Below, one piece after another: positions 7,376 to 63,226 of a stretch of 64,000 nucleotides of DNA. Where the stretch lies: contig NC_085846.1 of assembly GCF_035594765.1 (NCBI RefSeq), positions 27,515,190 through 27,579,189 on the forward strand. Reading direction: 5' to 3'. This stretch comes from Anolis carolinensis (lineage: Eukaryota). The notes below the pieces were generated by a model. That model did not search any database. It saw only the letters and a list, made by a program, of their open reading frames with translations, and was not told where the DNA came from. The stretch's first letter is position 1; every line of letters starts with the position of its first letter. The position numbers and the translations under genes are program-made.

Positions 7376-8250
7376 GGTCAGACCACACCTAGAATGCTGT
7401 GTTTTTTGTTGTTTTTGTTTTGGTGGATAAATAGTTTATTAATGATATGTTACATAACAAAACAGCAAATTATAGGAGATCAAGTCAGATAACAATCCTT
7501 TTGAAATGTACATGCACATCTACATTAGTCAATCAACTGGTTAATTCTAACATTGAGTACATATTATCAGTAACTCAAAACATATAGAATTGCTCTTTCT
7601 ACATGTTATCCACTATTTTCAATCTAGGATTCTACTCATTTTTAAAAAAATTAAATATAAGAGTTCACCCTAACATTCAAACAAAGACATACAACATATT
7701 ACACACCACAGACCCTGCACGTGCCCCAAACCCCCATCCCACACCTAGAATACTGTGTCCAATTCTGGGCACAGCAATTTAAGGGAGATGTTGACAAACT
7801 GGAATGTGTCCAGAGGAGGGCGACTAAAACGATTAAGGGTCTGGAGAACAAGCCCTATGAGGAGAGGCTTAAAGAACTGGACATGTTTAGCCTGCAGAAG
7901 AGAAGGCTGAGAGGAGACATGATAGCCATGTATAAATATGTGAGGGGGAGTCATAGGGAGGAGGGAGCAAGCTTGTTTTCTGCTGCCCTGGAGACTAGGA
8001 CGCAGAACAATGGCTTCAAACTACAGGAAAGGAGATTCCACCTGAACATCAGGAAGAACTTCCTCACTGTGAGGGCTGTTCGGCAGTGGGACTCTCTCGC
8101 CCGGACTGTGGTGGAGGCTCCTTCTTTGGAGGCTTTTAAGCAGAGACTGGATGGCCATCTGTCAGGGGTGCTTTGAATGTGATTTTCGTGCTTCTTGGTA
8201 GGGGTAGACTGGATGGTCCATGAGGTCTCTTCCAACTCTATGATTCTATT
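7376..8250 (+). mobile_element. CR1 LINE 3' end, interrupted at 7402-7738
   Basis: RPHLEYCVQFWAQQFKGDVDKLECVQRRATK...LFSLQKRRLRGDMI-type CR1 C-terminus; tail CCAACTCTATGATTCTAT. Confidence 0.92.
7402..7738 (-). mobile_element. Retroposed 3'-UTR fragment (L1/Tx1-like) with A-rich tail
   Basis: 19-bp TSD ccacacctagaat(g/a)ctgtg at 7383-7401 and 7739-7757; AATAAA plus A-rich tail on the minus strand. Confidence 0.7.
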
Positions 8251-9487: not shown

Positions 9488-10160
9488 ATTGCTCAATGGT
9501 TTAGATATCTCTTTACTTTACAGTCCCTTACTGTCTATCCTCTCTTCCTCCCCCCTATCGCTATTTCTAAACACCATTAACTTGTAAGACAAAGGGTAGG
9601 GCTAAGGGGGTCCGTAATAGAAACAGATTCTAAAAAGGGTTCCATGAATCAAAAAGTTTTGGGAACCACTGCTTTAATACATTTAAATCTTGCCTTCCTG
9701 ATAAGATTCTCAACAGCATGTGTGTGGTCCCTTCCCACACAGCTTTCTATTCTCACAATGATCCTGTGAGGCATCATAAACGGAATGGTCTCTAGGTTCA
9801 CAAGAAGGCTAGATAGATGAATATGAATTTGGCCCTAACTTTCTCCGCCCTAGGACTTTCTGGTTTATATGATAGAGGTACAGTTATTAAAAATTTGGAG
9901 CAAAATGTTCGAAATGCACACTGACTGCCTAGATGAGCCTCTGATAGAAATCAATTCCACACCATGGGAGAGCACCGCCTCACCTGGAAAGTTTCTGATG
10001 CAAGGAACATACTTTCCCTAGCCAGTGAATGGGTTGTAGCCTATCACCAGCTATAAAATAACCCCATGCCAAGAAGACTGAAATGACCAGTAAAAAAATA
10101 ATTTAGCAATCTGAGTTTATACCCATGCTTTTGCATTGTTAATTTTAATTCTCCAAATCA

Positions 10161-18300: not shown

Positions 18301-19403
18301 CCCCAAAATTTAGAATGCTGTTGACTTTTAAAAGCCACATGCACCCTTAGGCAAGGTCACCACCTTGGCGATGGACATTTGCCACAATTTTGTACCTAGA
18401 CTTGTTTCAGGTCCAGGAAAGTTTAGTTCTTGCTTTGAGACATGTCCTGTGTTGGGTCAACAACAACTTTTGGCACTTAGAAAAGCATCATCATCAACTG
18501 CAGACTACTTTAGCATCTTAAACTCAGTTTAAAGCAATTGAAGAAAGCTGAGAACAAAGTGGGGATTTGAGGAGGTAATAGAAACCGAGATATTTTAAAA
18601 TAGCTGGAGAAGTAGGACAATCAGGAATTGGGATTGTTTTTACCAATTTTGGACAGTTTTCAGAATAAATTCTCACAGAGCTACTGCCACTTCCTATTTT
18701 TGATGTGAGCCTTTTCAGGTTAAGTTTAACTTGGACAAGGTTAAAAACTACTGGTCTCACAGTAGGGAACATAAATTAAGGAGACTAGAAAGATCCTAAA
18801 CTCATATTTCCCTGGATGCCCCATATGTTACATCATCTTAAATGTAACACAGACCTAAAAGTGGCTTGTCCTACGTAGTGGACATAATGTGAACTACAAT
18901 AGTATTTCTAAGCAGTCTATTAAAATACGAAAGGGTAATAATCCTTTGACGTAGCCACTTACTTACACATTACCCGAAAAAGAGGAAGAAAGAGTGCTGA
19001 GATTTGCACAATATTGGGATATGCTACCATATACATAGAATTAATTCCTACCATGTAAAATTGTAAAGAAAAAAATTACCTCTCTGTAGCAAGGAAGGTT
19101 GATTAGGGGTGCATCTACACTGTAGCATTAATGCAATTTGATACCACTTTATCTGCCATGGTTCAGTGCAATGGAATCATGGAAGTTATAGTTTTACAAG
19201 CTCTACCAAAGCATGCTAGTGCATCACTAAACTTTAACTCCCATGATTCCATAGCATTGAGCCATGGCTGTTAAACTGGTGTCAAACTACATTAACTTTA
19301 CTGTGTATGCACCTGATTTATCTGTTATCCAGGTGCTTCCTGTGGATGGGCAGCTTCAGTTACCTGCACTCCCTCCTTTTGATTTTATTTCTCCTTAAAG
19401 AGG

Positions 19404-19503
19404 GCTTTGGCTGGCTAGTGTTTAAAACAGAGGGTACCTCCAGGAAGACAATAGCTTTGGCTGGCTAGTGTTTAAAACAGAGGGTACCTCCAGGAAGACA
19501 ATA
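19404..19503. repeat. Perfect 50-bp tandem duplication
   Basis: gctttggctggctagtgtttaaaacagagggtacctccaggaagacaata x2. Confidence 0.95.
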
Positions 19504-20861
19504 AAGCAGGATGTGTTATCTTGAAGGTTGTCCATCTTGAATAATTTCTTAACTACTTCCATAGTTGGTGCCTTGGCATTGGCAAGAGGTGCATGCATGC
19601 ACACACAGAAACACATGCATACACTTCCTCTTATAGACATGCTTCTCTGTTTGCTTACAAACAGATTAAAAGTAAGAGCATGACGACGCCTTGAGCAAAT
19701 ACCTTCTGAGGCTCTGATAGAAGCCGCTTCAACCCAAGTCAGAAGTTGGCTTTGGACCAAGAAACCTCACGGTGATTTCTGAGATAAGACTTACCTCACT
19801 CCTGTGGCAAGGTCAAGTATTGCGGCCTATCACAAAGAGCATCGAAAAGTCTGTGGGTTTGGTTATTTGAAACTACAATTCCCAGAATCTCTCAGCTATC
19901 TGGAAGAGAAAAAAAGAATCACAATTTCTTTGCTCTGGACTCATAGTCAACTCTGGTACTGGCACAGTTATACTGCCAGTCAATCTAGATTTTTAAAATC
20001 ATGTCAGAAGCGACTTGAGAACACACTGAAAGTCGTTTCTTGTGAGAGAGAATTGTCCTTCTACCGAGACATTGCCCAGGGGATGCCTGGATGTGTTACT
20101 ATCCTGCTGGGAGACCTCTCAAGTCCCTGCAAGCTAGAACTGACAGACGGGAGCTCATCCTGTCTTGTCTCGCAGATTCGAACTGCCAACCTTCAGGTCA
20201 GCAACCCAACCGTCAAGGCAGCAGTTCAGCTGGCACAAGGGTTTAACCCATTGCTTCACTGCTTCTTAATCCAGAAATAGGGTTTAGGGACACACTCTCC
20301 TGTCAGTAGGAATGTCAATATGTACTTTCCAAAACAAAATATTTGTATTGGGGTTGGGAATATTGGGCTTCATGTTATTGTTTTGTAAAATTAAAACTGT
20401 CATGTGGACAATTTTAATGTGTTTCCCCTTCACCAGCTACAATAGAAGTGAAGTTGTGCTATGGGTATTGAAAGTAGTCATCTAAGATCTACTTGAAGGA
20501 CTACTTTCAACAATAATTGTGTGAATGTGTAGCCCCATAATCTTGGGCAGTTGCCTGTTCTGACTGATGAATTTCAAGTTTTCATGCACCAAAATTGTAA
20601 GGTTGTTCAGCTGACTTGTGTACAGTTTCTCAGTAATAACTCACTAGCGTGACCACATATTCTTACTTGGCCACATGTATGTTAGTTTTCCTCTGTGACA
20701 TGTTGGAAAGTATGAAATTGGGTTTGGGAATGGTAAGCATGAAATTCAGAATCTAGACCCACTAGATGAAGAGGAAAGAGTGAATCCAATTCATAAGATG
20801 CTAGCAATAACAGATTTGGTCTTCCTTCTCTCCAGGGCTGACAAGTCCTTCTCTGTTCACC

Positions 20862-21185
20862 ATGGCAGAAAACAATTATAGCTGGTGGAAGTTGACTTTT
20901 CTCCGGAAGAAGAAATCCACTCCCAAGGTGCTGTATGAAAGCCCTGACATCTATCCTGTTGCTAATAATGAAAACCAACAAGAAGGGATGCGAGCAGATG
21001 GTGGCAGCGACGCAAACAGTCAGCAGGAATTCAATGCCCGGCTGGAGAAGATTGTGGACAAAAGCACCAAAGGCAAACACGTCAAGGTCTCCAATTCCGG
21101 GCGCTTCAAGGAAAAGAAGAAAGTCAGGGCCACGTTGTCGGAAAACCCCAACTTTTTTGCTGGCAATGACCGGGATGAGAAATGA
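20862..21185 (+). CDS. PRR15L: Proline-rich protein 15-like (ATAD4), 107 aa, single coding exon
   Basis: [19 protein letters not shown]...[36 protein letters not shown] signature; good Kozak context (cACCATGG); acceptor cttccttctctccag ends at 20835; synteny with PNPO and SP2. Confidence 0.96.
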
Positions 21186-24100
21186 TGGGCGAATGAAGGA
21201 GGTGCCCATTCATTACCCTTGGTGGTTATTTGGAGACGCTTCTCTGACCCTGAGAAGCCGACTGTGAATCAATTCCATTACATTTGCAAATGAAGTTAAC
21301 GAGAGGCCTGTCTGGGGCTCCAGGATTAGGTCCCGATTTTCACATGAAGAGTGGAGGTTCAGAGGGAAATGAACTTTATTATTGTTATTGTTCTTTACTT
21401 TTTTTAATTTAAGGAATAAAAAGAATATTTACATGAAATGCAAACCTGCTGCATAGTTAGCAGTGGAAAAATGAAAAGCGGAATGCGTGAGAGGACATTT
21501 GCAGAACTGCTTCATATTAACCCTGCCAGACCAGACAAGGTCACTCATCTTGGGTCGCAAATGCTGGGAAGTGGCACCAAGAGGGAGAAGGTGGTGTGCC
21601 ATTGAGCCACCTTTGTCCTACCTCTCCTATAAAATATTTTAATAAAGGTAGGCTATTAGTGCAACAGAAAGCTGGACTGAGACTATTTGCCACCTGAAGC
21701 AGAGCAGTGAGTGAAATGATCTCCCTTCCCTGCACCCCAAGTCAAATCAAGTTCCATAGTTCCAAAGCCAACCAAACCCATAGCCTCTGCCTGTCCCTAT
21801 TTGGCACAAATGGTGTCAATTAATCCTCTTTCACCACACTTTTTCAGATTATTTAAAAATGCTCATTTTTGCCTCCTCCTGCTCACATTTCTCCCCTTTG
21901 CCCGCAGCTTATTTCAATTGCTACAAACTGAGTCCAAAGTGAAAAACAAAACAATTTCCACTCAACTAATTCATCAGGATGAGAGGAGCAGGTGGAATCT
22001 AACATTTCCCTATAAGCTCTGAAAAAATTACGCAGCCTTTCCTAGCTTGTGTATTCTTCCTCATTTATAATATTTGCTATTTTGACCATACTCTGATCTG
22101 CTCGACAACAAGTGTCTTGGTTTTCATCTGCTAAATGTTGGAGGTCATGGATGATTAGATTCAGAGATTAACAGGGGTGTATATGGACTACATATTGTGT
22201 AACTAGCTACAAAGCAATCCATAACATCTGTATAATGCGCCCCGTATAACTCCGTTTATTATGATTACAACCAAGTTTGACTACAAAACTGGTTCTTTTG
22301 TTCCCTTCATTTGGGAAATTATATGCCTCTTGCCTTCCTTGGCCCCCTCAAAGGCTTTCATAAAGGGAATCAGGGTGTTGCTTGGAACAGGGCAGTAGAA
22401 TCAGGACCGAGATATTTTGCCATTTGAGGTGGAGCACTAAATGACATCCCCACTGCCCAATTCAAGGTCCATAGTTTCCAGAGCAAGTCATTTTGGCACA
22501 TGAGGATGAAGTACTCAAGTATTGGGGAGAAGTACAAGTACTTCTCCCCAATCCTGGCAATAAAAATACAATATGATAATAAGCAATACAGATAGGCAAC
22601 AATTTGATACCCTTTCATGACATCCATAATCTGCCTATTGGTGGGGTTGACTCATAAGTAACAACCCCGATGCTTTCCCTTAGGGTGGGATTTGTTCATG
22701 CTAGCCAAAATTGCTGTACTTCAGAGATGAGAAATTGTTTGTCTCTAGCGCAAATTGAACATTAAACCTCAAGGAGGAAGGATTTTCTCTGCCATGTGCC
22801 AGGGCTCACTAGTTTTGAATCTTCAGGGACCTCTTATTCTTAATACTGCATATTTTTGTGACACAGAGGATAGGATTAATTTTTTGGACAAGGACAGGAG
22901 TTTTGGTGGCAGGTAGATGTCCCTTCTATGTCCCTTCTAAGGAGAGCTAGACTAAAGTGAGACTGGGGATATATAGCCATCTTCTGGACTACAACTCCCA
23001 TTAAGTATCACCAATGACTCTATTGGCCAGGACTAATGGGAGTTGCACTTCAAAAGCGTCTGGAAGGTCATGCATTCTCCAAGCCTGGACTAGAGGATAT
23101 TTTGAGTCTGCATTTCTGGTTAAATCCTATTGAAATATATGAGCAGAAGGATTTTCAACTCTGTCCTGAGGTGCATGCCTAAAGCTTCACCCAAACTTGT
23201 GGCAAACTTTTGTATTAGTCCTGACTCTCATCTGTTAAAATGTAGGAAAGATCTGATAAAGCTGCTGTTTGTTTCACACACTGAATTCAAGGTTGTCCTT
23301 TTCTCACATTCAGTTCAGTCACCTCCAAGCCAATTCCAGCCAACTCAGCCTGGCAAGCCAAGTGAACTTTCACTGCAAAGAATTGTATTAATAACTCAAC
23401 CATGTGCTTGTAAAAAAGCTGCAGTTTTGCTGTACTTTGCACTCCTGTTTTCCTAAGCCTTGTAGCTATTTACATTTCTAATGTCCCAACTGTTGTTCCA
23501 TATGGTCCAGTTACCAAAAGGAAGGAAAAAACAAAAACAAAACATAAATAGCCAGTGTGGTGTAATGCTTTGAGGGTTGGGCCAGAACTCTGGTGACCTG
23601 GGTTTGAATCCGCACTTGACCATGGCTACTCATTGGGTGACCTTGGGCAAGTCACACTCTCAGAGGAAGGTAAAGGCAATGACAAACCTCTTCTCAACAA
23701 ATATTTCCACAAAAACCCTGTGATGGACGCTTCTTAGGGTCATCATGAGTCAGAAACAACTTAAAGTCGCATAACAATGTATGTGTGCATATGAATATGT
23801 GTGTCTATGGATATGATTGCTCACCTCACCAGATGAATTATTGCAGTCTTAAGGGTTTACTGCCATCCTGACTAGATCTTAGAAAAAATATTTTGGATTA
23901 CACTGCCAACTCCCTTGCTGGATTTGAGATTCTGGGAATTGTGCTCCAACATCCCCTCCTTTCCTAAGCTCTCTTCATGGTCACAACTGACTCTTGCCCA
24001 ACAAGGGCCAAAAACCTGCGGCTTTCCTGATGTTGATAAATTCTGCTACACCAGAATGAATGTGTGAGAAACCGCATGTCACTTCTGGTGTGAGAGAATT

Positions 24101-25159
24101 GGCCAACTGCAAGGACGTTGCCCAGGGGACTCCTGGATGTTTGATGTTTTACCATCCAGTGGGAGGTTTCTCTCATGTCCCCGCACAGGGAGCTAGAGCT
24201 GACAGACAGGAGCTCACCCTGCTCCCCAGATTCAAACTTCCTACCTTTGGGTCAGCAGAACTGCCAGCACAAGGGTTTAACCCACTGCGCCACCAGAGGC
24301 TCAATAATGCATGACTGATGATCAAGGATGATGGGAGTTGAAATCTAAGAATATGTATAAGCCTCGCTCCACAGCCCTTTCTAGATTTGAGACAGAAAAA
24401 AATGAACAGCCTGATTGATAGGTTTGTCCCCACCCTTCCCCAGTTTAGCAAGGTTGCTGGGCTTTCTCCTGCCTGCTGCAAAACATTAAAAAGAATCATT
24501 ACTGTATACTGGAAGTCCCAAGGCTGGTTCATCCAGTGTAAATTTTTTCTGCAACTAGGTGTGGGGTGTCTCAAATTAGATCAAAGTCACAGAGGGAAGG
24601 GATGTATAATTCTGATCCCTGTAGAAGGGATGCAATCCAATGCCTTCAGGCCAGAGAGAGAAAAACTTACAGAAACAATATAGAGGCATGTATGATTGGG
24701 GTTATGGTGCCGAGGAAAGGGGATTGGCTCCCCTGCTGCTGTGTCATAGCCTTATCCAAATTGGAATTTGCTATAGATCCATTTTGAGGAAGAAAATTAT
24801 GTGAGAAGCAGATCTTAGCAAAGTTCTCCCACTAAAACATCTGGTTTTCTCTTAAATGGCACATACAACAGAGAAAGATCTCCAATTCATTGTACTTCCA
24901 ATACTTGCAACAAAGGTCTATTGATAACCCAACCATTCTGATGAGATGTATATAGATTAGGTGGTATAGATGAAACATAATTACATTTCTGTCTGTCAAC
25001 AACAATACAGTACAGATACATTTCTTTCTGTGTATATTTTAAATTAAGACTTCCTCCATACCCCTCCCAGTTGTGACTTTGACTATATATATATATTAAA
25101 GTGCTCTTACTGTATGGACAAAAAGTGTAATTCAAGTCAGAGTAATAAACTTTAACTAC

Positions 25160-36468: not shown

Positions 36469-36597
36469 CTCTCTATCTGGGATCACTGTGCTTTGCAGAC
36501 TCACAATGGCCCCAATTTGGCTGCTCTTTGGACGCGACTGGAAATACTTCTCTGATTCCTGCTCAGGAAGCCTCTCCACCGAGCCTTCAATCCGCAC
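36469..36597 (-). CDS. PNPO: PNPO exon 5
   Basis: [43 protein letters not shown]; 129 nt. Confidence 0.97.
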
Positions 36598-37219
36598 CTG
36601 GAAAGAAACCAATAAAAATAACTAATGGGAAGATAAGAGGGAAGACTTATCAGGGGTTATGGTATATGGTTCTAACCCTGAATATGTTCAGAATAAATGG
36701 AAAAGAAAGACCCATCCTAAAGTAAATTGATCTCTTGGCATACTTTGCTACTGTGTTCTAATTGTGCTAACTTTTTCATTTCTTTGAGTTAATTGGCCAT
36801 CCCATTCCATGGTCCTTCATCCAAAGGAGTCCCTGCTGCTGCTCCACAGATGAATTGTCCCTCTCATTTTCTAACACCACTCATCTGCGAATCTAGCAAT
36901 ATCGTCATCCTAAGCTTTGAAAATGTATTTCCCATGGATACTAACACCTGGCCGATATTATTCACAATATCAAAGCTGAAGTATTGGAAGTTCTTTGTCC
37001 CTACTCTCTAGTCCTACACAATTTCCTCCATAAATCGAGCCATAGGAAAACTCTCTGGTTATTTACTCAAAGACTTCAACAGATTTAACTAAGCTTTGAA
37101 GCATTTTCAGAGCAATTGGAATACTGAAAGAAGGCATGATAAAGTTGCTTCTAAACTCCTTCTCACAGTAGCCTGTGCCCCCAATGCAACTTTCAGTCTG
37201 ATTGCAGAACTTATTTTCA

Positions 37220-37354
<135 letters not shown>

Positions 37355-37713
37355 TCACTAGATAAGTTAATCATTTCATTTACACAGGTTTGTCTGTATT
37401 CACACCCAACTTTTTCATTGGCTGCTTACCAATTTCTGTCCACTCTAGCTCTCATTTTTCTAGCCCTCCACAGACTAGGCTTCACTGTGAGGCTGATTTC
37501 TACTCTGGCTGGCAGAAGTCTTCTCATCCTCATATATAAGTAATCTGTTTATCTAGGCTGTAAGCTTTTATCACTCCCAACATGTTGTTTTGTTCAACCT
37601 TTCTTCATGCAAGCACTTAATTAAAAAAAACACATCAACAGTCACTTGTTAAGCAACTTTCCATTTTTTGTCTACCAAGCAGTGATATTAACATTGAACA
37701 AATAAGGCTATGC

Positions 37714-37808
37714 CAGGCATGGGCAACACCCAGAAATTCCAGCCAGCTGGTAAGTTTCTGGGAGTTGAAGTCTAAAACATCTGGGAGGCCAAAGTTTATC
37801 CATGCCTG
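37714..37808. mobile_element. Short hAT MITE
   Basis: TIR CAGGCATGG / CCATGCCTG; TSD ggctatgc / ggctatac. Confidence 0.8.
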
Positions 37809-38149
37809 GGCTATACTATATCCAACTAATAACTGGGCAGAATCACTGAAAGTTTACATTTAAAAAACCCTTTTCGCTTTTTATGGTGCCACAAAACTCT
37901 GTGTTTTGCTGCCACAGAGTAACATAGTGATCATCGTGAACATTTTTACTTATTCGCTGAAGCAAGAGTTTAAACTTATTTTGTTCTCTCCTTTCTAAAT
38001 ACGCCTTGATATGTCAGCTCCAAAGCAAGTAGTTTGGATTGCCAGCTGATGACATTCTTGATCTTTCCCATAGGTTTCTCAAGCAGGACAGCATTATTAT
38101 TATTATTACTTATATACTGCTTCCCCCCCTTAAAGCAGTGAACACTCAC

Positions 38150-38249
38150 CAGTTCCTTTCCTTTCCTGCTCTCATGGTTGGTGAAGAAACGGAAGCCTTC
38201 CTGACTAACGCCCTTCAAAAGCAACATTCGAGCCGAAGGTTTACCATCC
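38150..38249 (-). CDS. PNPO: PNPO exon 3
   Basis: [33 protein letters not shown]; 100 nt. Confidence 0.97.
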
Positions 38250-38337
38250 CTGGGAAGGAATAAACACAATTTGTTGTAAGTCACACAAATAAGAATCTAT
38301 ACAATAAGGAAAGAATGAAAACAATTAGGATTCCTAC

Positions 38338-38462
38338 CTGGTACATGTGGCCAGGCACATGGCATTAACTTCTCCAATGGATGGGCATTTCATTGCTTCC
38401 TCAAACCATGCGGAGAACTGCTTTATGGGATTAAGGGAGATGAGATGTTTTTCCTCAAAGGC
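38338..38462 (-). CDS. PNPO: PNPO exon 2
   Basis: [42 protein letters not shown]; 125 nt. Confidence 0.96.
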
Positions 38463-38819
38463 CTAGGAAGAGAAACAAACAGCATTGCCATAGAAGCTAA
38501 CCATATCTGTCCACACAACAAGTTTCTGGGTTCCTCCATTTTAGTAGCTTCCTCAACCTCAAAAAATACTTATTTAGCCATTTAAGATTATAAATTTACA
38601 AGAACGGGGATTATATTATCTCTGCCTCTTCTTTAACATGTGGAGAGCAGTCCTCTGAAAGGGAGAGCCATGGAAGCTTTCCACGTCATTTCAACCCTAA
38701 TTTCCTAGGATTTTTCACAATATCTCCATACCTAGAGAAAATTCTCCCCCTCATAACTCTTGATGGAGGAGGGAAGGGACAAAATACATTGCCACCTAAC
38801 ACACATTTATGACACCAAG

Positions 38820-39590
38820 AACACAAATGCTACGATCTGCTAAGGACAAGAGGAATCCTCTCATCTCTGCAGGAGTCTACCATATACCATACAGCTGTGG
38901 ACAAGTCTACATAGGGACCACCAAATGCAGTGTTGCCAAAACATGAATCAAGGAACATGAAAGTCACTGCAGACTAACTCAACCAGAGAAGTCAGCCATA
39001 ACAGAGCACCTGATGAACCAACCTGGACATAGCATATTATTTGAGAACACAGAAATGCTGGACTGCTCCAACAACCACCATGTCAGATTACACAGAGAAG
39101 CCACTGAAATCCACAAGCATATGGACAATTTCAACAGAAAGGAGGAAAACATGAAAATGAACAAAATCTGGCTACCAGTATTAAAAACTTTAAAATCAGG
39201 ACAGTAAATAAAGAGCAACTTTGATAAAATAGTGGGATTCCAGACAAGAAACAATCAGGGCCAGCCAACACCTCCCAACAAAGGATTTCCCCAGACAGGA
39301 AGCAGCCAGGCTTTGAAACTGCATTCAATGTTAATCAAGGTGGCAACATTTACACTTTTCTCAAACAGACGAGAATTCTTTCTCCCACCCTGGATATTAG
39401 TCCACAGATATAGATAGATAGATAGATAAACCTCACTTGCCTAGTTTCCAACAGACCTCCCAACGTCTGAGCATGCCTGCCACAGATGTGGGCGAAACGT
39501 CAGGAGAGAATGCTTTTGGAACATGGCCATACAGCCCGGAAAACTCACAACAACCCTGTGATTCCGGCCATGAAAGCCTTTGACAACACT
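38820..39590 (+). mobile_element. Penelope-like element 3' part (GIY-YIG endonuclease remnant plus pLTR) in PNPO intron 1
   Basis: GVYHIPYSCGQVYIGTT (GIY-YIG), KSAITEHLMNQPGHSILFENT; pLTR the same as other copies. Confidence 0.9.
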
Positions 39591-39713
39591 CTGTACATGC
39601 TCGGGAACTCTATTGATAGCTACTGTATAAATTGTAATTATTCGGCCTTTACTTCATGCTAAGCCCCTGCAATGGAGAAAAGGGATTCTGGGTCCTAATC
39701 CCTACTCGCTCAC

Positions 39714-39848
39714 CTCGTCGTCTCCCCTGTAATTCTTCCGAAAGGGACCCAGATCCATCGCATAAGAATACTTTCCAACTTGGCCTGAACTATGAAGGCC
39801 GACGGGAGCCAAAATTCCGAGCCCGAAACGCCTCCCGCAAGCCAACAT
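39714..39848 (-). CDS. PNPO: PNPO exon 1; the seven exons total 780 nt = 259 aa
   Basis: MLACGRRFGLGILAPVGLHSSGQVGKYSYAMDLGPFRKNYRGDDE then gtgagc donor; MDLGP.RK.YRGD as in vertebrate PNPO. Confidence 0.92.
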
Positions 39849-39849
39849 T

Positions 39850-40185
39850 CAGCTCACCTTCTATCCATTTAATGCGCATGCGTAGACAACATAGAGCGAG
39901 TCAAAGTCCGTCCCGCCTTTTCGTTCTCTCTCCGGTCGATTACAAAACAGCAGGAAGATGACAGGAACCAATCCAAAGCAAGGGAATGGTCTTCTATCCC
40001 GCCCTCTTTCACGTTCTAGCAAATCAAGAGGAAGACGGAGATACACCAATCAGAAGGAAAAATTGGGCCTTCCTCTAGCCAATAGAAAGCGACATCCCCA
40101 AATCAATCCGAAAAAGAACCTCAACTTGGGGAAACGGCGGGGTCCAAGGGGCGTGTCCTAAGGGGAGTGGGCGGAGCTTGGTGTA
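39850..40185. promoter_or_regulatory. PNPO CpG-island promoter, probably bidirectional
   Basis: NRF1-like TGCGCATGCGTA (~39873), CCAAT boxes at ~39968, ~40046 and ~40079, GC boxes GGGGCGTGTC and GTGGGCGGAGC (~40148-40178), no TATA box. Confidence 0.8.
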
Positions 40186-42699: not shown

Positions 42700-43900
42700 G
42701 TAAGTGAGAAAATAATTATTATAAGGAGGATTCTTAAAGATTTCCAAGTTTTAGTTCTATTCCTTTAACAGAGCAGGGTGGAGGGTGGGTCCTTTTCCCC
42801 AAGTAATGGTTCCCAGACTCATACGATGTGTTATGGCTGTGGGATGTTAGGATAAGGCACACACTGATCTTAGGGCAGATGTGTTGAAGGACAGGCAGGT
42901 GCCCCTGAGATAGCTTGCTGTCTTCCGGTACAGTGGCAGAAGCTCTCCCATTGCCAGTTTGGAAGTAAAATTCAACTCCATTCCAGCACCCTTCTATATT
43001 GCTATACTTCTGTTAACAAAGTCTCTGACAAAGATTCCTTCTTTCAAATGAAAAAACCAAGCAAGTCTTTTTACACCTTCCCAGCTTTCTCATTTCCTCC
43101 TCATTCTCTGTCTAACTGAATGATATTGAGCTGCATTAGCATTGGTATGATGGTGAAGGAGGGCAGGAGAAACACAGATTTTCATTGTTAGGTTGCAGTA
43201 GCATGTCTGCAGGAAAAGCTTCAGGGGAAAAGCTGATTTCTATTCTAGCTAATAGAATTTGGAATACTTGCATATACATTAGATATCTTGGGAGACAGGG
43301 ATTCAAATTTAAATATGAAACACATAAATATGAAACTACCATAGCCTGAAGGTAGTTTTATACAAAATGTTCCTAATAATTTTGTGCATGAAACAAAGTT
43401 TGTGTATGTTGAACCACCAGAAAGCAACCACGATCTCAGCCACTAGTGTGAAAGGTTTTGCAAATCAGAAATACTCAATTTGTACTTCGTTTTGAATGTG
43501 AAAACTTTGTCCTTGATCATATCAAGTAACAGTATCTCTGAGCATTGAGATAATGTCTCCCAGTAAAGAATAAGCTCAAATACAATTTTGGACTTTGCAG
43601 TATTTTGGATTTTGAAATTCTGGATAAGGGATACTCAGCCTGAACTATCCATACTCCACTTCTTACATTCTTTGCCATTCTGTTCTAGGCTAGAAAAGTT
43701 GCAGATCCATCCTTTGAAAAAGGAATGTCAACGTTGTTCAGAAGAACAGGGAAGTAGCAGTGACCCACCCAAAGGCTGGCAGTTTGCATTGCGTCCTTCC
43801 AGATATCGCAGACAACTATTTCTGAATCAGAGGACAAAGGGGCTTTCATTTCTGCTCAAACTATAAGAAGCTTTATGTGGAGAATGGGGAAAATGTGAAC

Positions 43901-44003
43901 ATGGCCTGGAGCTGTTGCAAAGAAAAGAAACCCCCAGAATTCAGCCCTAAGGTGGTGGAAGAACCAAAGTTTCCTTCCCATCCTAAGCCTCCTGTTATCC
44001 CAG
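43901..44003 (+). CDS. Novel/uncharacterised gene, coding exon A
   Basis: Strong Kozak AACATGG; MAWSCCKEKKPPEFSPKVVEEPKFPSHPKPPVIP; donor CAG|gtacaa, phase 1; in-frame upstream TGA at 43823. Confidence 0.7.
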
Positions 44004-44498
44004 GTACAAACATCTCCTTCCTTGCTGCTCCATCATGTCTCAGGTAGCATGATCATAGACAATGCTGTCTGGAGATTGAGAGTCTTTGTCTAAAAAAATA
44101 TTCAAAATAAAATCCTACCTGAGATATTATCTTGTGAGCTAAGATGTCTTTACGAAAGGGCATGTTGTTCAGCCTGCCTGGACCTTGAGATGATTATGAA
44201 GGCCCTTTTCTTGGTCCCACCATCTTGGGTATGTTTGGGCAAAGACACATCTTTTTTCTTCATGCAGAAAAAGATCATTTTATTCTAAAAGATACATATG
44301 TTCTTTGGTAGGGATTTTAACATGTAGTTTCAAGTTGTTTCTGATTTCTGCTGACCCTATCATGGGGTTTGTTAGGCAAGATTTATTAGGGGGAGGAGTT
44401 GCCCAAAGTCAGAGGTCTTTGCCTCTCTGTGGCCGTTGGGGCATTCAGTACCTACCAAAAGTGGTGACTTAACCCAGCAAATAATTCATTTTTGGCAG

Positions 44499-44654
44499 TT
44501 GCCTACGTATTGAAACATGAAGAAGATGAGGATGAGTATGAACCGGAAAATAAATCACCCCCAATCAAACCCCCGGTCAAGGAAAAGCCCCCGATCCAGG
44601 TTCAGGTTCAAGTCCAGGTCCAGGAGGTGAAGCAGCAACAAATAGAACCATCGG
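44499..44654 (+). CDS. Novel gene, coding exon B (alternative in-frame donor after 44660)
   Basis: Acceptor ttcatttttggcag; VAYVLKHEEDEDEYEPENKSPPIKPPVKEKPPIQVQVQVQVQEVKQQQIEPS; 156 nt, phase 1-1. Confidence 0.75.
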
Positions 44655-45194
44655 GTGAAGGTTCGTGGACAGAAAAAAAATTACTGACTTTAAATGGCTA
44701 TACAGTATAATTTACTCAATTTCACCAGATAGATTTAAAGTGATAACCCCATCTATCAGTGTACATAATTCTTTTTGAATAAGATACATGACTAGAGCAA
44801 GTTGTTCAATCCTAGTTTCCTGCTCCTCACTGGTCAGGGATTTTTGTGTAGCTTGGCATGCTGAAAAACCCAAGTTCAATCTCCGGGGTGGCAATTGATA
44901 GGAAAAACCTATCCCTATCCATGACCTTGGAGAGCTGCTGCCAGCCTGAATAAACAATACTGGGTAAGACAGTTTGCCTCCATATAAAGCAGCATCCTGT
45001 GCTCAGATCTGAAGAGAAGTTACATCGGCAACTGCTTCACTCCCAACTTGCAATAAGCAAATGCTTAATCCTGTTAGTGAGTTAGTAGCAAGGTCCCAAA
45101 ACTCTCTGCTAATACACATGAGAAATTTCTACAAGGCAAAGAGATTACCTATGTTGTTGACTCAACTTCCCTTTTTGTACTCCCCATTTGGAAG

Positions 45195-45347
45195 ATGACG
45201 ATCTCCAAAAGCCCTCCACCTCAGAGGAAAAGGACACCAGAGAAACACAAACCAATCCACATCATTTCCCGAAATCACCAGGAAGGGTCACACTGGATGA
45301 GATCCTGCATGGGATGCAAAGGATCCAGTTTATTATGGATAACACAG
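45195..45347 (+). CDS. Novel gene, coding exon C
   Basis: Pyrimidine tract plus AAG acceptor; DDDLQKPSTSEEKDTRETQTNPHHFPKSPGRVTLDEILHGMQRIQFIMDNT; donor CAG|gtatgt; 153 nt, phase 1-1. Confidence 0.75.
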
Positions 45348-45574
45348 GTATGTGAAAAGGTCTTCCCATTTTTTTTATCAAATGGCAGAAGCCTAAAATC
45401 CAAGAGTTAATTTGTTTTGTACTGTGGAATGGATTGGTGAACTAAAGCCTTCTTCCTGTACCTGTACATATAGACATACTTTCTACATCTGTTTGTTCAT
45501 ATCCAGATAGTACATTATTCACGTCAAAATATTGCCCACAAAAAAACAAAAAGTTGGCCAGATCTATCCTAGAA

Positions 45575-45960
45575 TAACGTGCCTGATTCTGATCACCATA
45601 TTTAAGGACATTAACAAGCTGAAATTTGTCTAAAAGGCAATTAACGTGAGGTCTGGAAACCAATCCTTATGAGAAATAGTGGATGAACCTCAGAAAAGTC
45701 ATTTATAGTATGTAAGTGACAGAGACCATGAAGAAGAACCAAACTAATGAATTCAAATGACTAAATTAAAGAACTTCCTGAGTTCCAGCAGTGACTATCT
45801 TCATTAGAAGATTTCAAAGAGAGGTTTAGTTGATTAACTTTTAGGGTGCTTTAGGAGGGGATTCCTATTCACTAGATAGTTCTTGGGTTCAAATCTATGC
45901 CTCTATGGGTTGGACTGGATGGCCCGCGAGGTGTCTTCCAACTCTATGATTCTGATTCTA
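45575..45960 (+). mobile_element. Old CR1 fragment plus CR1 tail in intron 3 of the novel gene
   Basis: Degenerate match to the CR1 3' region; tail CCAACTCTATGATTCTGATTCTA. Confidence 0.7.
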
Positions 45961-46817
45961 TAGGTCGATTTTGAAGCCCCTGGCAGCACAATAGGTTAAA
46001 CCACTGAGCTGCAGAATTTGCTGACCAAAAGGTTGGCGGTTTGAATCCAGGGAGCAGGGTGAGTTCCTGCAGTTTGCCCCAGCTTCTGCCAACTTAGCAG
46101 TTTGAAAACATGCAAACGTGAGTAGATCAATAGGTACTGCTCTGGCAGGAAGGTAACAACGCTTCATGTAGTCATGCCAGCCACATGACGTTGGAGGCAT
46201 CTATGGACAATGCCGGCTCTTCAGTTTAGAAATAAAAATGAACACCAACCCCTATAGTCGGACATGACTAGACTTAATGTCAGGGGAAAACCTTTACCTT
46301 TACTATAGGTCTTTTTAAAGAGACTTATGGAATATTTATTAATGGCATACAGTTTCATGAACTATAATCTGTTTCATAAGATCCATAACACTTTATGGAT
46401 AAGTTAGGATAAGGCGACAGGCACAAAATATGCTGTCTTTATAGCAGCAATTGATGGGAACTTTAGCATGAAACTACCAAATTAGTTTATCAGAAATTTT
46501 AGTTCTGTGATGTGCACAGAGACCATTTTTTCTCACTTCATGTGTTACCAGCACTGCTTTGTTCATGATCACTGTAGTGATTTCTCCATATAGACATTTA
46601 CTTATCAGCTTGTACATTTTGCATTACATACCTTCTGTGACCTTGCTCTTCGCCACTGTCAGCTCCACACTGCCATGTGTATATGTGTCTGTCAACTAGG
46701 AACATATTTTTCATATTACATATGAAACAGAAAAGTGCATGAATCCCACGTCTGATAATTGTTATAATAATCATTGCCCTCTACATTTGACTCAAAACAA
46801 TGTGCTTTTCCTTGCAG

Positions 46818-46942
46818 TGACTGATTTTGAACAACGTATCTCCCGCTTGGAGCGGATAGTTTTAAAAATGAGGAATGCGTGGATTCACCACAGAACTTGC
46901 CATCTTGAGGGTCTGGAATATGATGATGAACATGAAGATTAA
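46818..46942 (+). CDS. Novel gene, coding exon D (stop TAA); candidate poly(A) signal ATTAAA at 47152
   Basis: Acceptor gcttttccttgcag; VTDFEQRISRLERIVLKMRNAWIHHRTCHLEGLEYDDEHED*. Confidence 0.75.
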
Positions 46943-48321
46943 TTTTTAAAATGGCTTTCATAATGTTTGATTTTTTATACCTATATTAGCAATTTGTACA
47001 TCAGTACCCTCTTTTCTCCCAAAACAACCGTGAATCCAGTTTTTCAAAACTTTCTATTTATAACATTGCTACCTTCAGTTAAAGATATTTACTTTAGAAT
47101 TCTAATTATTTTTAACAATCTATGGCTAGCATGCCTTAATATTCTTCCATAATTAAAATATAGATGCATGAATATGCTCTCTGACTTTCAAAACTTGGAA
47201 GTTATTTTTGGACTGCATCTTCCAGCAGCCATGGCAACACTGCTGGGGAAGCTTTGGGAGTTATTGTCCAAAAAAACTTCCAAGATTTCCAACCAGGGGG
47301 TGGCATAGTACATGCCAAAATTTGGAGATAAATTGGTGCTGAGGGAGAATATACAAGCCAGCAGTACAGAAGTTGAGAAAGCAGAGCCACAACCAAGATA
47401 GGCAAAATGGACTGGATAGAGCTACAAAGAGCTCTTGAGGGGCAATAGAGGACAGCAAGGAACAAAGCAAAATGGCAATAATTTGGATTCCCACTTATGC
47501 ATAAATAATGGCAGATGCCGGAAGAAACTTTATAATGTCAAATAAGGTTGCTTTAGAGTTTTAACTCTCAGCACGTTGTGATGGAAACTCTAATCTAAAC
47601 AATCAAAATCACAGCAAATAGCATGCAATACTATAATCTTGGAAGACCTGCAGATGGGTCAGTGAACAAGAGATACAGTAGTTTTTTAGGATGGTAATTC
47701 TGCCACCTAAACCATACTCAGCCATCTAAACCAATAAACCAGCTAGTAAGGGCAGCTCAACTTGACAACAGCTTCCCAGGGTTTTCATACACTGTTACTT
47801 GGGATCCTTTTTAAAGAGTGTGGCCTTTGCACACATCACATCCAAACATTATTACACATGTAATGCTCCCACATTCCCAAGTTCTTCAGGTTTACCAGGT
47901 TTACTCACATGTATCTTCAGCTACAAGGTACTTAATCCTCCTTCCCTGCAAATGTTTATTATTTATTTATTTGCCCCATTTATACCCCACCCTGAAGGGG
48001 ACTCAAGGCAGTTGTTCAGTGTTCAGTGACCACAGCCCTTACCTCTTTACTCAGATGAAGAAACAATGAAATTCTATACACATTTATGGAGTTCAGTGAA
48101 ATTTCATCTTATGTGTGCATATGACTATAACCTAAGTCAGGTACGCACTGTAAGCCACCCAACGAGGAATTTATAATCCCATCCACTCTCATTATAACCA
48201 TCTTTCCTCTGAAAACTGGTCTGTGCAGTTATCAATAGTACAACCTGTTACTGAAGCTTGTTATGGATCTTATCATTCTTTTAAATAAGACAAATCTCAA
48301 ACAGGACTGTAACAACATGGG

Positions 48322-50729
48322 TTTATTTCTCCTGCCTAACTCCCCTTCAAAATAACTTCCCTCCCAAAGATACTTGAGGGTTGTTTGATGTGGAAAGGGC
48401 AGACTGTAGTTGGTGGGTAGAGTTATGCACCGTATATCCTAAGCCCACACAAAAGGAACCGATTAGTTGACCATCTGTAAACAACTAATAGCTGAATACA
48501 GTACACAGGGACCAATCCACTGTGAAGGTGTCCTGTACAAGCCTATCGAAACACCATGCTCTTGTAAAGGTTCCATGAAGTTTCACTGAGATTTGTGAAG
48601 TAGTGTTTGCTGTTAGCCTGTGCCCACAGACAGAAAGTGCCTATAATATGAGACCTTGGAAGTACAACTGCAGGCAAAGGTTTGTTTTACATTTTATAGA
48701 TGTGGCAGTCTGAAGTGACACTCCTGTGATGACTTACACTGCCACTATATGTATGGTATACTAGCAACATGCTCAACATTTTAATACACCAGCACTCCAT
48801 GTCACTATGAAATGCATACACCAGGCCAAAGGTAATTTTCCATACATGAAATTAGAAAATGTATTTGTGACTCTTGTTAATGCTGCAAAGAAAGCAAAAT
48901 GGGGAGAGACAGCATAAAACTGAAATATACATTCTGGCCAGCTAAGTCTTATACAGTGGCATCATAAACCAATCTAATCTGAATTTATGAAACTGTCACT
49001 AGGAGTCTCTATGAAGTAAAAAAAACAAAAACACTCTAGCCCATCTTAACCCTTCACAAAGCCACTTAAATATTCCATTCTTCCACTATCTATATTTCTT
49101 AAACCATGATGGAGTTTGCTTCTGTCAATTAAATTTACCTATCAGGAAATCTGATTGTTTTCTCCTTAATCAATCCATATTGGGTTCGCTACATACTGAC
49201 CAGTCAAATTACAGCATTAATCAAAAACACTCTAAAGAAAAACATACTTCAAACAGTTAAAACTAAAAAATAAAGTGGATTTTTTTAATTTAAAAGCTCA
49301 AAAATAACAAGCCGTATGTTTCTGAAACATGTAGGAAACACATAATGCAATATATAGTCTATGATACAATATACACTATAATACACAGAGGGGATGATAG
49401 GAAGTACTTTAAAGGAGAAGGGTGAGCGGAAGGAAAACACCAGTTTGCCTAGAAAAAGAAAAAGTAGAAAAAGTAAATTTTTGAGGAAAAAGAAATCCAA
49501 TAGAACAAAAAAAAAAAAAAAGAGAGAGGGGGGGCTGGGATGAAAGAAGAAATGAACTCCATTTTTGATGGTAAAAAAATGCTTGTATTTTAGCACACAC
49601 ACCATCACCTGATTTTACCAGGGCCTGTTAAGTACAATTCTGAAAAGGATAGTGGCATATTGCTCCAATTCAGTGAAAGCAATCTGGTTTTACATTTGGA
49701 GCTGTACCACGATGTGCTTGCTGAACCAAGCAGTGCAGAATTGCATACGAAGCCCCATAGCTTCTTGATACAATTTGTATATGTACATCCTTCTGTTGTA
49801 TTTGTGGCTGTCTTGCTGAGGGCCCACAGCTATGATCCAGCAACTCTAGTAACTACAGACAAGGGTTGCTGTTCACAAATGGACATCCACCACTCTCCTG
49901 AGCAAAGTGCTGCTGCCACATATGTCCTAGAAAGCCCTGGGTGTACAAAAAGCATGTCATAGACCTGACAATGGCACTGTCGGGGTACAGGGCCTTGCAT
50001 TAGCAAAGAGACTTTGGGCTTTAAAAAACACACACACAATTAAATTAAAAAATTGCTCACAATACATAATTTGAAACTGGGGGAAAATATAAGGCAACAT
50101 TCTCTGTAGAAAAAAAAGGTTTCCTAAGTAGGTTTTTTTTAATATAGAGATATATATTTATATATATTTATAATTTTTAAATATAAAGTAGGAATGTGCT
50201 TGGAGGACTGAGAGTCCCGTTTTCAGGTGGTTTCCTGGTCCCCCATTCAAAAGCTTCACAAGCACAAGGGGGCAGCGGATGGGAAGAGGGAAGCAAAATT
50301 TTGAGTGGGGTCTACTGTTTCACTGGTGCTACTTTCAAGGGCACAAGGAGGCCCAGGGGTGTAGCAGAGCAGGGAGTTCGCTTTTCAAGCTCCTGAGGCC
50401 AGTGGGTAGATGGGCTTCGTGCCTAGCTGTTTCCATATCCTTTCCCCTGCTCACTGCTCGGCTTTGTGCTGATTTTAGCCCCCAGATAGTTGTCTTCATC
50501 CCGGGCTGAAACCACAGCATCTGATGAACCTTCGAAGAAGTTCCAAAGGAGTGGAGGTCGTCTGAGCCAAGGAACAGTGGCTGTTAACCAATTCCCTACG
50601 CAGATGCCAACGTCCCAATGAGGAGTGTTTCTTAGGCATTTTGCTCTCCTTGTGGAGATTCCCATTGCCCACATGAAGGGGTTATTACCAACCCTACTGT
50701 TTCCCCACTTTTCCTGGTTGCATCCAACC
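48322..50729 (-). other. SP2: SP2 3'UTR (end uncertain)
   Basis: TE-free, U-rich tracts on the minus strand; possible poly(A) signals ATTAAA ~49285 and AATAAA 48322-48327. Confidence 0.5.
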
Positions 50730-51508: not shown

Positions 51509-51852
51509 CACTAAGGGAAAATCAGCAAAATCCAAGGCTATGAAAAAAGAACAGGCTTAAGCAATGTGAGCTATTTGTGTCTCTCCAAATGCTTTTGGCT
51601 ATAACTCTACTATCACTAATCTTTTTTTTAAAAAAGGTTAAATAAAGCAGGCATGCAGTCACATAAAATTCACTTGGGACTCTGAAATATCTACAGGACA
51701 GCCAAACTAGAAGAGTATCACCTCAAAAAAAATAGAGCATTATTCCTGCTTTACATAGCATCTGAATGGCTGACTGTGATAATTAATATATGAGAAGCAC
51801 CTGAAGAATCTGTATTAGGCCCTTTTTTCTTACCCAATATTTTTGTACAGAC

Positions 51853-52046
51853 CTGTATGTGTCCGGGCATGCCGTTGCAGCTCATCACTGCGTGTGAACC
51901 GCTTCCCACAAAGGACCCAGTTGCACACAAAAGGGCGTTCTCCTGTGTGTAGGCGCACATGAGCCCGCAACAGAGAGGTCTTGCGGAAGGTCTTCCCACA
52001 TTCAGGAACGTGGCAGATATGCCTCTTCTTACCCTGGTCCCCCAAC
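51853..52046 (-). CDS. SP2: SP2 exon (zinc fingers 1-2)
   Basis: [64 protein letters not shown]; KTSLL is diagnostic of SP2. Confidence 0.98.
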
Positions 52047-52835
52047 CTGAAAGGAAAGGAAGATTTATTTAGCAGCACTGGTATAAGGAGAATGGCGAGG
52101 AGAGTTGAAGAAACACAGATTTTCAGTGTCCAGCTGTAGCAGCATGTCCACAGTAAACAATGCAGCAAATCTTGAGCTGGACAAGAATGAGATTCACCCC
52201 TAGGTGATTTTGTCATAACTGTGTGTGCCAGCTTACAACAGGTAAGGTAAATAGCAGCTGCTTCCAGATTCCCTTACAGAGCATGTAGGAACACCAAAAT
52301 AGAGAGAAAGGGGGTGAGAAGGTAGGACTGTTTCATTATCTTTTCCCCAACATGTTAAAAACACAAGTTGTATAGATTTGACCACCAAAATGGAAATCAT
52401 ATGAAGAGGATAGGCTGGTGAAAGAAAGTCATTGACAGACTCATTCTAGAAGAAGCCTTCTAGTTTCAAAATGCATTTGTGTATTGGTCCAGACCTCATG
52501 ATTTCATTTCACATGTGTACATTGTTAGCTCTGAATAGAAAATTACTGAAACAAGTTGAATTACTATTTTTGATGTGGTGTAGGAACCTACCACCCCATA
52601 TTTTTTTCACATTATTTCTGCCCCTAGTACTAATTTTTTTCTATTAAAAAAGTTATGCCCAGAAACTCAAAGACTTGGTTAACTGAGATATGTCTGCATT
52701 CTAGGGTTTCAGTCAAACAGTACTTCCATTTTGTTCAATACAGTTTCTATCTTCTCAAACAATGGCCCAGAGCAGTTATTTGTAGAGAACTTTTGGAGCT
52801 TTGGTGTCCCTTTCAGATTGAGTCTCAGTTCTCAC

Positions 52836-62039: not shown

Positions 62040-62740
62040 TGGGGATGGAGGTGTGTCAATCAATTCTGGATGAGGTTAAACTCCTCCTGAAAGACTGTGT
62101 TCACAGCTTCGGAGTGCTCCTGGATCCATCTCTCCAAATGTCAGCCCAGGTAGATGCAACAGTCAGGAGAGTTTATTATCAGCTTCGGTTTATATGCAAT
62201 GTGCGCTCCTTCTTAGATTTAGAGGATCTAAAGATGGGAGTATATGCGCTGGTAACCTCAAGGCTGGACTTCTGCAATGCGCTTTACATTGGGATACCTC
62301 TGTATCAAGTTAGGAAACCCCAGTCAGTTCAAAATATGGCAGCCAGATTGGTTACGGGAACATCTAGGAGTGAGCATATCACTCCTATACTAGTCACTCC
62401 AGTGACTTCCAATTAGTTTCCAGGCAAAGTACAAAGTGTTGGTTGGTTTAGACTTTTAAAGCCCTACATGGTTTTGGTCCAGGTTACCTACAGGATTGCC
62501 TTCTCCAGTACAATCCATCCTGAAAACTTACGTCCTTTGGAGGGTGGGGGGGAGTCTACTCCAGCCAACCAGAACCCAACTGCCAACCCGGAGGACTTTT
62601 TCATTGGCTGCCCCAAGAATGTGGAACAACCTGCCAGAAGAGGTCCAACATCTAAATGAGCTTTCAGAATTTAAAACGCATATGAAGACTTATCTCTTCT
62701 GACAGGCCTACCCAGCCAGTTTCAATCACTTATTTATTTC
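62040..62740 (+). mobile_element. L2 LINE 3' fragment
   Basis: GVLLDPSL.M..QV...YYQLR...ALVTSRLDFCNALYIG...QNMAARLV; RTFSLAAPRMWNNLP. Confidence 0.9.
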
Positions 62741-62820
62741 TAAGTTTTGTACAACATATACCCAATGCATTAGTAACATTTGCATGTCTTTAAGCCAAAT
62801 GTTACTAATACACTTCTTTA

Positions 62821-63226
62821 AGCCCTACGAGGAGTGGCTTAAAGAACTGGGTATGTTTAGCCTGCAGAAGAGAAGGCTGAGAGGAGACATGATAGCCATG
62901 TACAAATATGTGAGGAGAAGTCATAGGGAGGAGGGAGCAAGTTTGTTTGCTGCTGCCCTGCAGACTAGGACACGGAACAATGGCTTCAAACTACAGGAAA
63001 GGAGATTCCACCTGAACATCAGGAAGAACTTCCTCACTGTGAGAGCTGTTCGGCAGTGGAACTCTCCCCCCCGGACTGTGGTGAAAGCTCCTCCTTTGGA
63101 GGCTATTAAACAGAGGCTGGATGGCCACCTGTCGGGGGTGCTTTGAATGAGATTTTCCTGCTTCTTGCAGGGGGTTGGACTGGATGGCCCATGAGGTCTC
63201 TTCCAACTCTACGATTCTATTCTATG
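62821..63226 (+). mobile_element. CR1 LINE 3' end (same family as 7739-8250)
   Basis: Near-identical to the 7850-8250 copy; (ATTCT) tail. Confidence 0.92.

Follow-up and report, generated by a model that had tools for sequence, protein, structure and literature searches.

A four-exon gene between PNPO and SP2 in Anolis carolinensis that very probably is LOC100551546, a member of an unnamed protein family found so far in squamates

A stretch of 64,000 nucleotides (nt) of the Anolis carolinensis genome (RefSeq assembly GCF_035594765.1, contig NC_085846.1, positions 27,515,190 to 27,579,189 of the forward strand; hereafter the window, in whose numbering coordinates are given unless another locus is named) raises the question of whether a chain of four open exon pieces on the plus strand at 43901-46942, between the genes PNPO and SP2, is a genuine protein-coding gene and, if so, what it encodes. 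An earlier reading made from the letters alone (the sequence-only reading) had proposed a hidden gene of four exons at this place. We conclude that this four-exon gene is very probably LOC100551546 of RefSeq, which encodes a protein of 180 amino acids (aa) and belongs to an unnamed, so far squamate family that is under purifying selection; this is our main explanation of the locus.

The structure of the gene can be followed in the window itself. The four exon pieces 43901-44002, 44501-44653, 45197-45346, and 46820-46942 translate without stops into 34, 51, 50, and 40 residues (exons A to D, respectively), with TAA after the last; the acceptor dinucleotide AG stands before exons B, C, and D and the donor GT after exons A, B, and C; each of the three introns is in phase 1, with split codons at the junctions that read directly as g/tt (Val), g/at (Asp), and g/tg (Val). 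The ATG at 43901 is flanked by A at -3 and by G at +4, and no other in-frame ATG lies between it and the preceding stop. Coding exon A (43901-44003, plus strand, as are all features of the gene) extends from this ATG to the donor and encodes residues 1-34 plus 1 nt; it includes, at 43913-43918, the Cys codons of an invariant W-x-C-C-K motif. Coding exon B (44499-44660) encodes a VAY(V/I)LxHEEDDD motif followed by a hypervariable low-complexity spacer. Coding exon C (45195-45347) carries an invariant TQTNP motif at 45245-45259, and a long helix begins within it at 45293; coding exon D (46818-46942, TAA included) encodes the remainder of this helix, an invariant HHRTCH (46886-46903), and an acidic tail. 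A candidate polyadenylation signal read from the sequence, ATTAAA, is found at 47152-47157, 210 nt past the stop. Translation and direct reading of the letters hence agree with what had been described previously for this locus, i.e., stop-free pieces up to a TAA, AG/GT ends, three phase-1 introns, a strong-Kozak ATG, and ATTAAA at 47152.

Identity with an annotated gene emerged from a phmmer search of 1.84 billion representative proteins with the exon C piece (50 aa), which matched three related proteins and one spurious repeat protein; in the three related proteins, the sequence runs on without a break into the parts encoded by exons D, B, and A. The Anolis member of the family is "uncharacterized protein LOC100551546 [Anolis carolinensis]" (180 aa; XP_062840226.1, XP_062840227.1, the older XP_016850100.1, named "early nodulin-75-like", and UniParc UPI00020399CF), whose coding region on GCA_035594765.1 CM069372.1 spans 3042 nt and is thus as long as 43901-46942. 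This protein maps exactly to the window exons 43901-44003, 44499-44660, 45195-45347, and 46818-46942. Since RefSeq annotates LOC100551546 over exactly the same span, the gene is not hidden as had been proposed; it is already known as an annotated gene model through more than one NCBI Anolis release, and annotated orthologues exist for Pogona, Podarcis, Zootoca, Liasis, Naja, Varanus, and Phrynocephalus.

The RefSeq protein differs from the product of 178 aa (537 nt) in the sequence-only reading by an additional Gly-Glu at the B/C junction; all residues of the shorter product match LOC100551546, and the two missing residues are due to its choice of an exon B donor at 44654. Use of the donor at 44660 (AAG/gttcgt), which had been listed as the alternative and is used by RefSeq and by the orthologues, gives a coding sequence of 543 nt and 180 aa. 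Exon B ends in ...CAAG/gt in all orthologues, which aligns with Anolis GAAG/gttcgt at 44660, and the GT of the donor after 44654 is GC at the equivalent Pogona position. Because the orthologue exon B ends align there, 44660, and not 44654, is by alignment the conserved donor.

Orthologues were collected through family searches that used as query the Podarcis muralis member, then an eight-member alignment, and then only the last 77 residues of the Anolis protein. Searches of the protein collection yielded nine family proteins, all from squamates, with iguanians, lacertids, snakes, and one varanid represented (Anolis carolinensis, Pogona vitticeps, Phrynocephalus forsythii, Podarcis muralis, Podarcis lilfordi, Zootoca vivipara, Varanus komodoensis, Liasis olivaceus, and Naja naja). 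Records include Pogona LOC144583657, Podarcis muralis XP_028559240.1, Zootoca XP_034990283.1, Liasis PHA67_016979, and Naja E2320_002810; E-values between family members range from 1e-41 to 1e-118 with full-length similarity, and the family shares the C-terminal motif DFEQR[IL]SRLExIVLKMRNAW[IV]HH[RK]TCH. To compare the genes rather than the proteins, five orthologue loci (Pogona, Liasis, Naja, Podarcis, and Varanus) were fetched and each protein was mapped onto its own DNA. The coding sequence is divided in the same way in Pogona, Liasis, Naja, and Podarcis, into four exons by three phase-1 introns that occupy homologous positions; in Varanus, exons C and D are in the gene model and exons A and B are intact upstream. 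Exon A ends at the same donor, gtacaaac, in each of the five full-length gene models (Anolis, Pogona, Liasis, Naja, and Podarcis). Exon B ranges in length from 63 nt (snakes) to 288 nt (Podarcis), exon D is 125 nt long (122 nt in Podarcis), and intron lengths vary freely between 495 and 4837 nt. Each of the five orthologue loci has PNPO upstream on the opposite strand, and in three of them (Pogona, Liasis, and Naja) an SP2-like zinc-finger gene follows downstream.

These loci bear on a simpler explanation, namely that open frames with GT/AG ends line up here by chance, or that the transcript is non-coding and its open reading frame (ORF) untranslated. Stop-free exon chains are easily built in 3 kb given a free choice of GT/AG pairs, and none of the 18 sequencing runs listed for this stretch is recorded as RNA, which is uninformative; however, the identical chain, with the same junctions and phases, is present in five other genomes, and the exons align between species, whereas the introns do not. 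Specifically, when Anolis 43428-48500 was compared by BLASTN with the other loci, essentially only the four exons and approximately 250 nt upstream of the ATG aligned; the exceptions were one short Liasis match in the downstream intergenic sequence (48278-48331) and copies of an intron 3 repeat in Podarcis. Ratios of non-synonymous to synonymous substitution rates (dN/dS; Nei-Gojobori method, calculated exon by exon with split codons excluded) also speak against a non-coding origin. For exon D, dN/dS was 0.025 between Anolis and Pogona (13.5 synonymous vs. 2.5 non-synonymous differences), 0.011 between Pogona and Liasis, 0.017 between Pogona and Podarcis, and 0.07-0.10 between Anolis and Varanus, Podarcis, or Liasis; overall, values for this exon were 0.01-0.2 in most pairs, with synonymous sites near saturation. 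Values for the whole coding sequence were 0.23-0.43, and those for exon A were 0.4-0.9. In addition, 47 residues are invariant in all eight sequences of the family alignment; the last 40 residues are almost unchanged among iguanians, lacertids, monitors, and snakes, and the length of the linker that precedes them expands and contracts freely. We consider a chance chain or non-coding transcript very improbable.

Another explanation is that the exons stem from a recent retrocopy or from a transposable element. Interspersed repeats abound in the window, among them reverse-transcriptase-like ORFs (1867-2277, 7721-8176, and 62784-63146) and a SINE-like element in intron 3, yet no second copy of any exon is found in the window, and the gene is single-copy per species in the protein collection, at the same syntenic place. 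Moreover, the gene has introns and is thus not a retrocopy. The element in intron 3 (45906-46301) lies outside the coding sequence; it has seven BLASTN matches elsewhere in the window and matches at non-orthologous places of the Podarcis locus. Since the exon chain is shared, the coding sequence is under purifying selection, only exons align, and no exon has a second copy, we exclude chance ORFs, a non-coding transcript, and a transposon origin, the last of which we regard as exceedingly improbable. The comparison with other squamates therefore upholds the earlier proposal of a genuine protein-coding gene between PNPO and SP2, for which synteny, exon structure, and dN/dS are in agreement; the expectation that transposable elements fall only in introns holds as well for the one element detectable in the gene.

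Two observations weigh against parts of this explanation. First, pairs that include Naja show higher dN/dS in exon D, and the Liasis-Naja comparison yields two synonymous vs. seven non-synonymous differences (dN/dS of approximately 0.8); Naja exon D (locus positions 18345-18469) carries the replacements F143L, I162V, R165K, L169F, E170K, and E177K at positions that are otherwise invariant, which could reflect relaxed or altered constraint in this lineage or, alternatively, sequence errors. Second, the distribution limited to squamates rests on annotated proteomes, in which the gene is patchily annotated. No family members outside squamates were found in searches of these proteomes, which extended to no genome of a non-squamate vertebrate; no gecko, skink, or tuatara sequence was among the matches, and the search with the near-invariant C-terminal 77 residues matched only eight squamate proteins, in line with the lineage restriction suggested earlier; the gene is thus restricted to squamates as far as annotated proteomes show. 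This absence elsewhere is weaker than it appears, however, because annotators often miss or mis-model the gene. The Varanus komodoensis model (KAF7239614.1, "Chaperone protein DnaJ", 101 aa) is truncated and has a doubtful first exon of 19 nt, with intact exons A (locus positions 6024-6122, MSWSCCKED...) and B (locus positions 9566-9633, ...VAYILRHEEDDDEQPQASSGQ) upstream of it. The Phrynocephalus forsythii model (KAJ7313659.1) has correct exons A and B, continues with unrelated sequence after ...SSGQ, and lacks the C-terminal half; it apparently reads into the intron. Our comparison corrects both of these public gene models, i.e., the truncated Varanus model and the Phrynocephalus model that runs into an intron.

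A further alternative is descent from an older vertebrate gene, such as PRR15L/PRR15 or CCDC184, of which the gene would be an orthologue or paralogue that evolves fast and has diverged beyond recognition or is simply unannotated outside squamates. Because the linker and the N-terminus evolve fast (see the exon A values above), an old homology could be erased. PRR15L, a complete single-exon ORF at 20862-21185 on the plus strand (107 aa; Pfam ATAD4, E of 4.8e-33), is located 23 kb from the gene, and both proteins are small and largely disordered; they also resemble each other in two short collinear stretches, PKV..E close to the N-terminus and RLE[KR]IV within the helix. In contrast, BLASTP against PRR15L gave non-significant E-values of 0.25 and 0.43, hhalign assigned a probability of 2.3%, and the single-exon structure of PRR15L differs from that of LOC100551546 with its three phase-1 introns. 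With regard to CCDC184, a chordate cluster of this protein in the protein atlas reached a feature score of 0.80, but shuffled proteins reach this score one third of the time. Among the matches listed, no family member matched Pfam ATAD4 or DUF4677, and Anolis LOC100551546 had no Pfam match of any kind at E up to 10. We therefore did not assign the protein to the PRR15/PRR15L family (PF15321, ATAD4), in view of the BLASTP E of 0.25, the hhalign result, and the lack of a Pfam match, or to the CCDC184 family (PF15726, DUF4677), in view of the noise-level atlas score and the lack of a Pfam match; the restriction of C-terminal matches to eight squamate proteins also counts against an older relative. 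Descent from such a gene appears improbable, and LOC100551546 as a member of a squamate family of its own remains our explanation.

What kind of protein this gene encodes can be approached through the eight-sequence alignment, which includes six complete N-termini. The W-x-C-C-K motif is present in all six of these as well as in exon A of Phrynocephalus and Varanus; in the alignment the N-terminus reads M-x-W-[ST]-C-C-K-[DE] and is followed by a weakly conserved Pro/Lys-rich stretch and then by a block of [VI]-A-Y-[VI]-[LF]-x-H-E-E-D-D-D. Next is an acidic spacer of variable length, which in lizards consists of 40-90 residues of lineage-specific repeats (QV in Anolis, QEQEK in agamids, and VQELEAKR in Podarcis lilfordi) and is absent in snakes and Varanus. 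After the spacer, G-Q-D-D precedes the invariant T-Q-T-N-P (T106-Q107-T108), which is followed by S-P-x-K-x-T-L-D-E-I and by the almost invariant D-F-E-Q-R-x-S-R-L-E-x-I-V-L-K-M-R-N-A-W-x-H-H-x-T-C-H-x-x-G-L-E-Y-D-D. In the alignment, three short motifs (the twin cysteines, TQT, and the His/Cys cluster) stand out from fast-evolving surroundings. We also considered TQTNPxY as an NPxY motif; we give this less weight than the TQT reading, since Anolis has His and Pogona has Cys in place of the Tyr.

AlphaFold2, run on the alignment, predicted a single alpha-helix of 46 residues (residues 122-167) with pLDDT >90; the rest of the protein had pLDDT <60 (approximately 50 around residues 100-110, the TQT region), and the mean was 61.8. 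The protein outside residues 122-167 is thus predicted to be disordered. Hydrophobic residues are found at heptad-like spacing in the helix (L122, I125, M129, I132, M136, F143, L150, I153, and M157), the end of which carries H163-H164-x-x-C167-H168, followed by the acidic tail LEGLEYDDE. Every face of the helix is invariant from residue 142 on, which suggests that the helix packs inside a complex and does not only self-associate. Comparisons with known domains and structures were uninformative: Pfam had no match for the exon pieces or for any of the eight family members, a profile search of the PDB produced only low-complexity matches to Shaker channel linkers (E of 0.016 or worse), and in the protein atlas feature matches were at noise level and structure matches were unrelated bacterial helices. 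Names that databases have given to family members ("early nodulin-75-like", "histone H3.v1-like", "serine/threonine-protein kinase irlA", and "Chaperone protein DnaJ") seem to be artefacts that the low-complexity linker produces, uninformative with regard to function; no Pfam domain supports any of these automatic names, and we found no papers that name any locus tag of the family.

Within 43428-48500, alignment to several orthologous loci (Pogona, Liasis, Naja, Podarcis, and Varanus) is limited to the exons and to 43654-43900 on the plus strand; this conserved upstream block is probably a promoter and/or 5' untranslated region (UTR). Its core (approximately 43679-43735, with CATTC...GGAATG), a block of approximately 55 nt located 170-220 nt upstream of the ATG, is near-identical in six squamates (TTCTAGGCTGGAAAAG..TGCAGATCC..CATTCAAAAAAGGAATGCCAAC) and may represent a promoter or 5' UTR element; its inverted CATTC/GGAATG pair resembles TEAD (M-CAT) sites, and it holds a GCCAA half-site as well. 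An Rfam search of 43428-48500 yielded no match. An upstream ORF of seven codons (43875-43898; ATG TGG AGA ATG GGG AAA ATG TGA) stops 2 nt short of the main ATG; Pogona and Podarcis share its segment ATGGGG, which is not found in snakes or Varanus.

The genes on either side frame the locus in opposite orientations. PNPO exons lie on the minus strand at 36544-39896 and are collinear with the Pfam-labelled PNPO of Pogona; SP2 exons lie on the minus strand from approximately 50691 to beyond 56742, with C2H2 fingers at 51833-52216. LOC100551546 is therefore divergent (head-to-head) from PNPO, with approximately 4 kb between the start codons, and convergent (tail-to-tail) with SP2, an arrangement shared by Pogona, Liasis, and Naja. 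In Podarcis lilfordi and Varanus, a BEN-domain gene on the plus strand follows within the 10-kb flank (491 and 593 aa, at locus positions 19405-24704 and 15521-21841, respectively). Elsewhere in the window, ORFs at 1867-2277, 7721-8176, 62045-62416, and 62784-63146 resemble fragments of reverse transcriptase and of the C-terminal region of a non-LTR retrotransposon, and two of these retrotransposon-like ORFs have ...RKNFLTVRAVRQW... in common.

Discovery of a hidden gene thus does not stand, and the interest that remains is modest. It lies in a family that has neither a domain assignment nor a paper and that carries misleading automatic names, yet whose C-terminal 40 residues are almost unchanged, which makes it a clean case of strong constraint on a taxonomically restricted gene that offers three short motifs for testing. 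From these motifs we infer a possible role as a membrane-tethered adaptor. The cysteines C5-C6, beside basic residues, would be S-palmitoylated in the style of GAP-43 and so anchor the protein at a membrane, with the disordered linker as a spacer; the C-terminal helix would oligomerise and/or dock on a conserved partner, perhaps with a metal in the His/Cys cluster; and TQT, approximately 14 residues before the helix, would recruit the dimeric hub LC8 (DYNLL). LC8 typically clamps disordered segments of dimeric clients. The His/Cys pairs at i and i+4 on the predicted helix (H163-H164-x-x-C167-H168) would be placed so that a metal could sit between chains. Taken as a whole, the picture of an oligomeric adaptor with a lipid anchor and an ability to recruit LC8 is tentative and, in our judgment, doubtful, and the metal site is less likely still. 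A fuller version, in which a gene of the squamate ancestor, either born there or remodelled beyond recognition, encodes a palmitoyl-anchored adaptor that combines a helix with a His/Cys metal site and a TQT that brings LC8 to the membrane, seems to us unlikely; if true, it would represent a squamate-specific addition to the otherwise ancient LC8 hub network.

With regard to known LC8 clients, the LC8 motif spans eight residues within a disordered region and has TQT at positions -1 to +1; it favours a hydrogen-bonding residue at -4 and a strand-breaker at +2 (with P, D, or E preferred) and disfavours prolines before the anchor and bulky residues at -2, and dimeric partners are bound more tightly (PMC6607443). 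The family resembles these clients in that its invariant TQT is located in a predicted disordered segment approximately 14 residues before a long helix. Its consensus here is [KR]-E-x-[GE]-T-Q-T-N-P (D-T-R-E-T-Q-T-N-P in Anolis), with no proline before the anchor, E at -4 in five species (T in Anolis), G or E at -2, and a strand-breaking N-P after the anchor. Prediction of a homodimer from residues 100-180 scored 0.11 against a mark of 0.32, which counts neither for nor against binding. Several points do argue against the adaptor picture. The +2 residue of the family is Asn rather than the preferred Pro, Asp, or Glu, and the flank is charge-rich; LC8 does not bind many of the peptides that contain TQT (PMC6607443). 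The proposals of palmitoylation and of metal binding come from motif resemblances, and the function is inferred in its entirety, for a family with no Pfam entry, no solved relative beyond low-complexity matches, and no paper that we could find.

The second known system to which the protein can be compared is provided by GAP-43-type N-termini, which belong to dually palmitoylated membrane proteins. These N-termini share no sequence homology with the family, and in several species the residues that follow the family motif are acidic rather than basic; the likeness lies in C5-C6-K7, i.e., in adjacent cysteines within the first seven residues that are conserved in the otherwise fast-evolving exon A.

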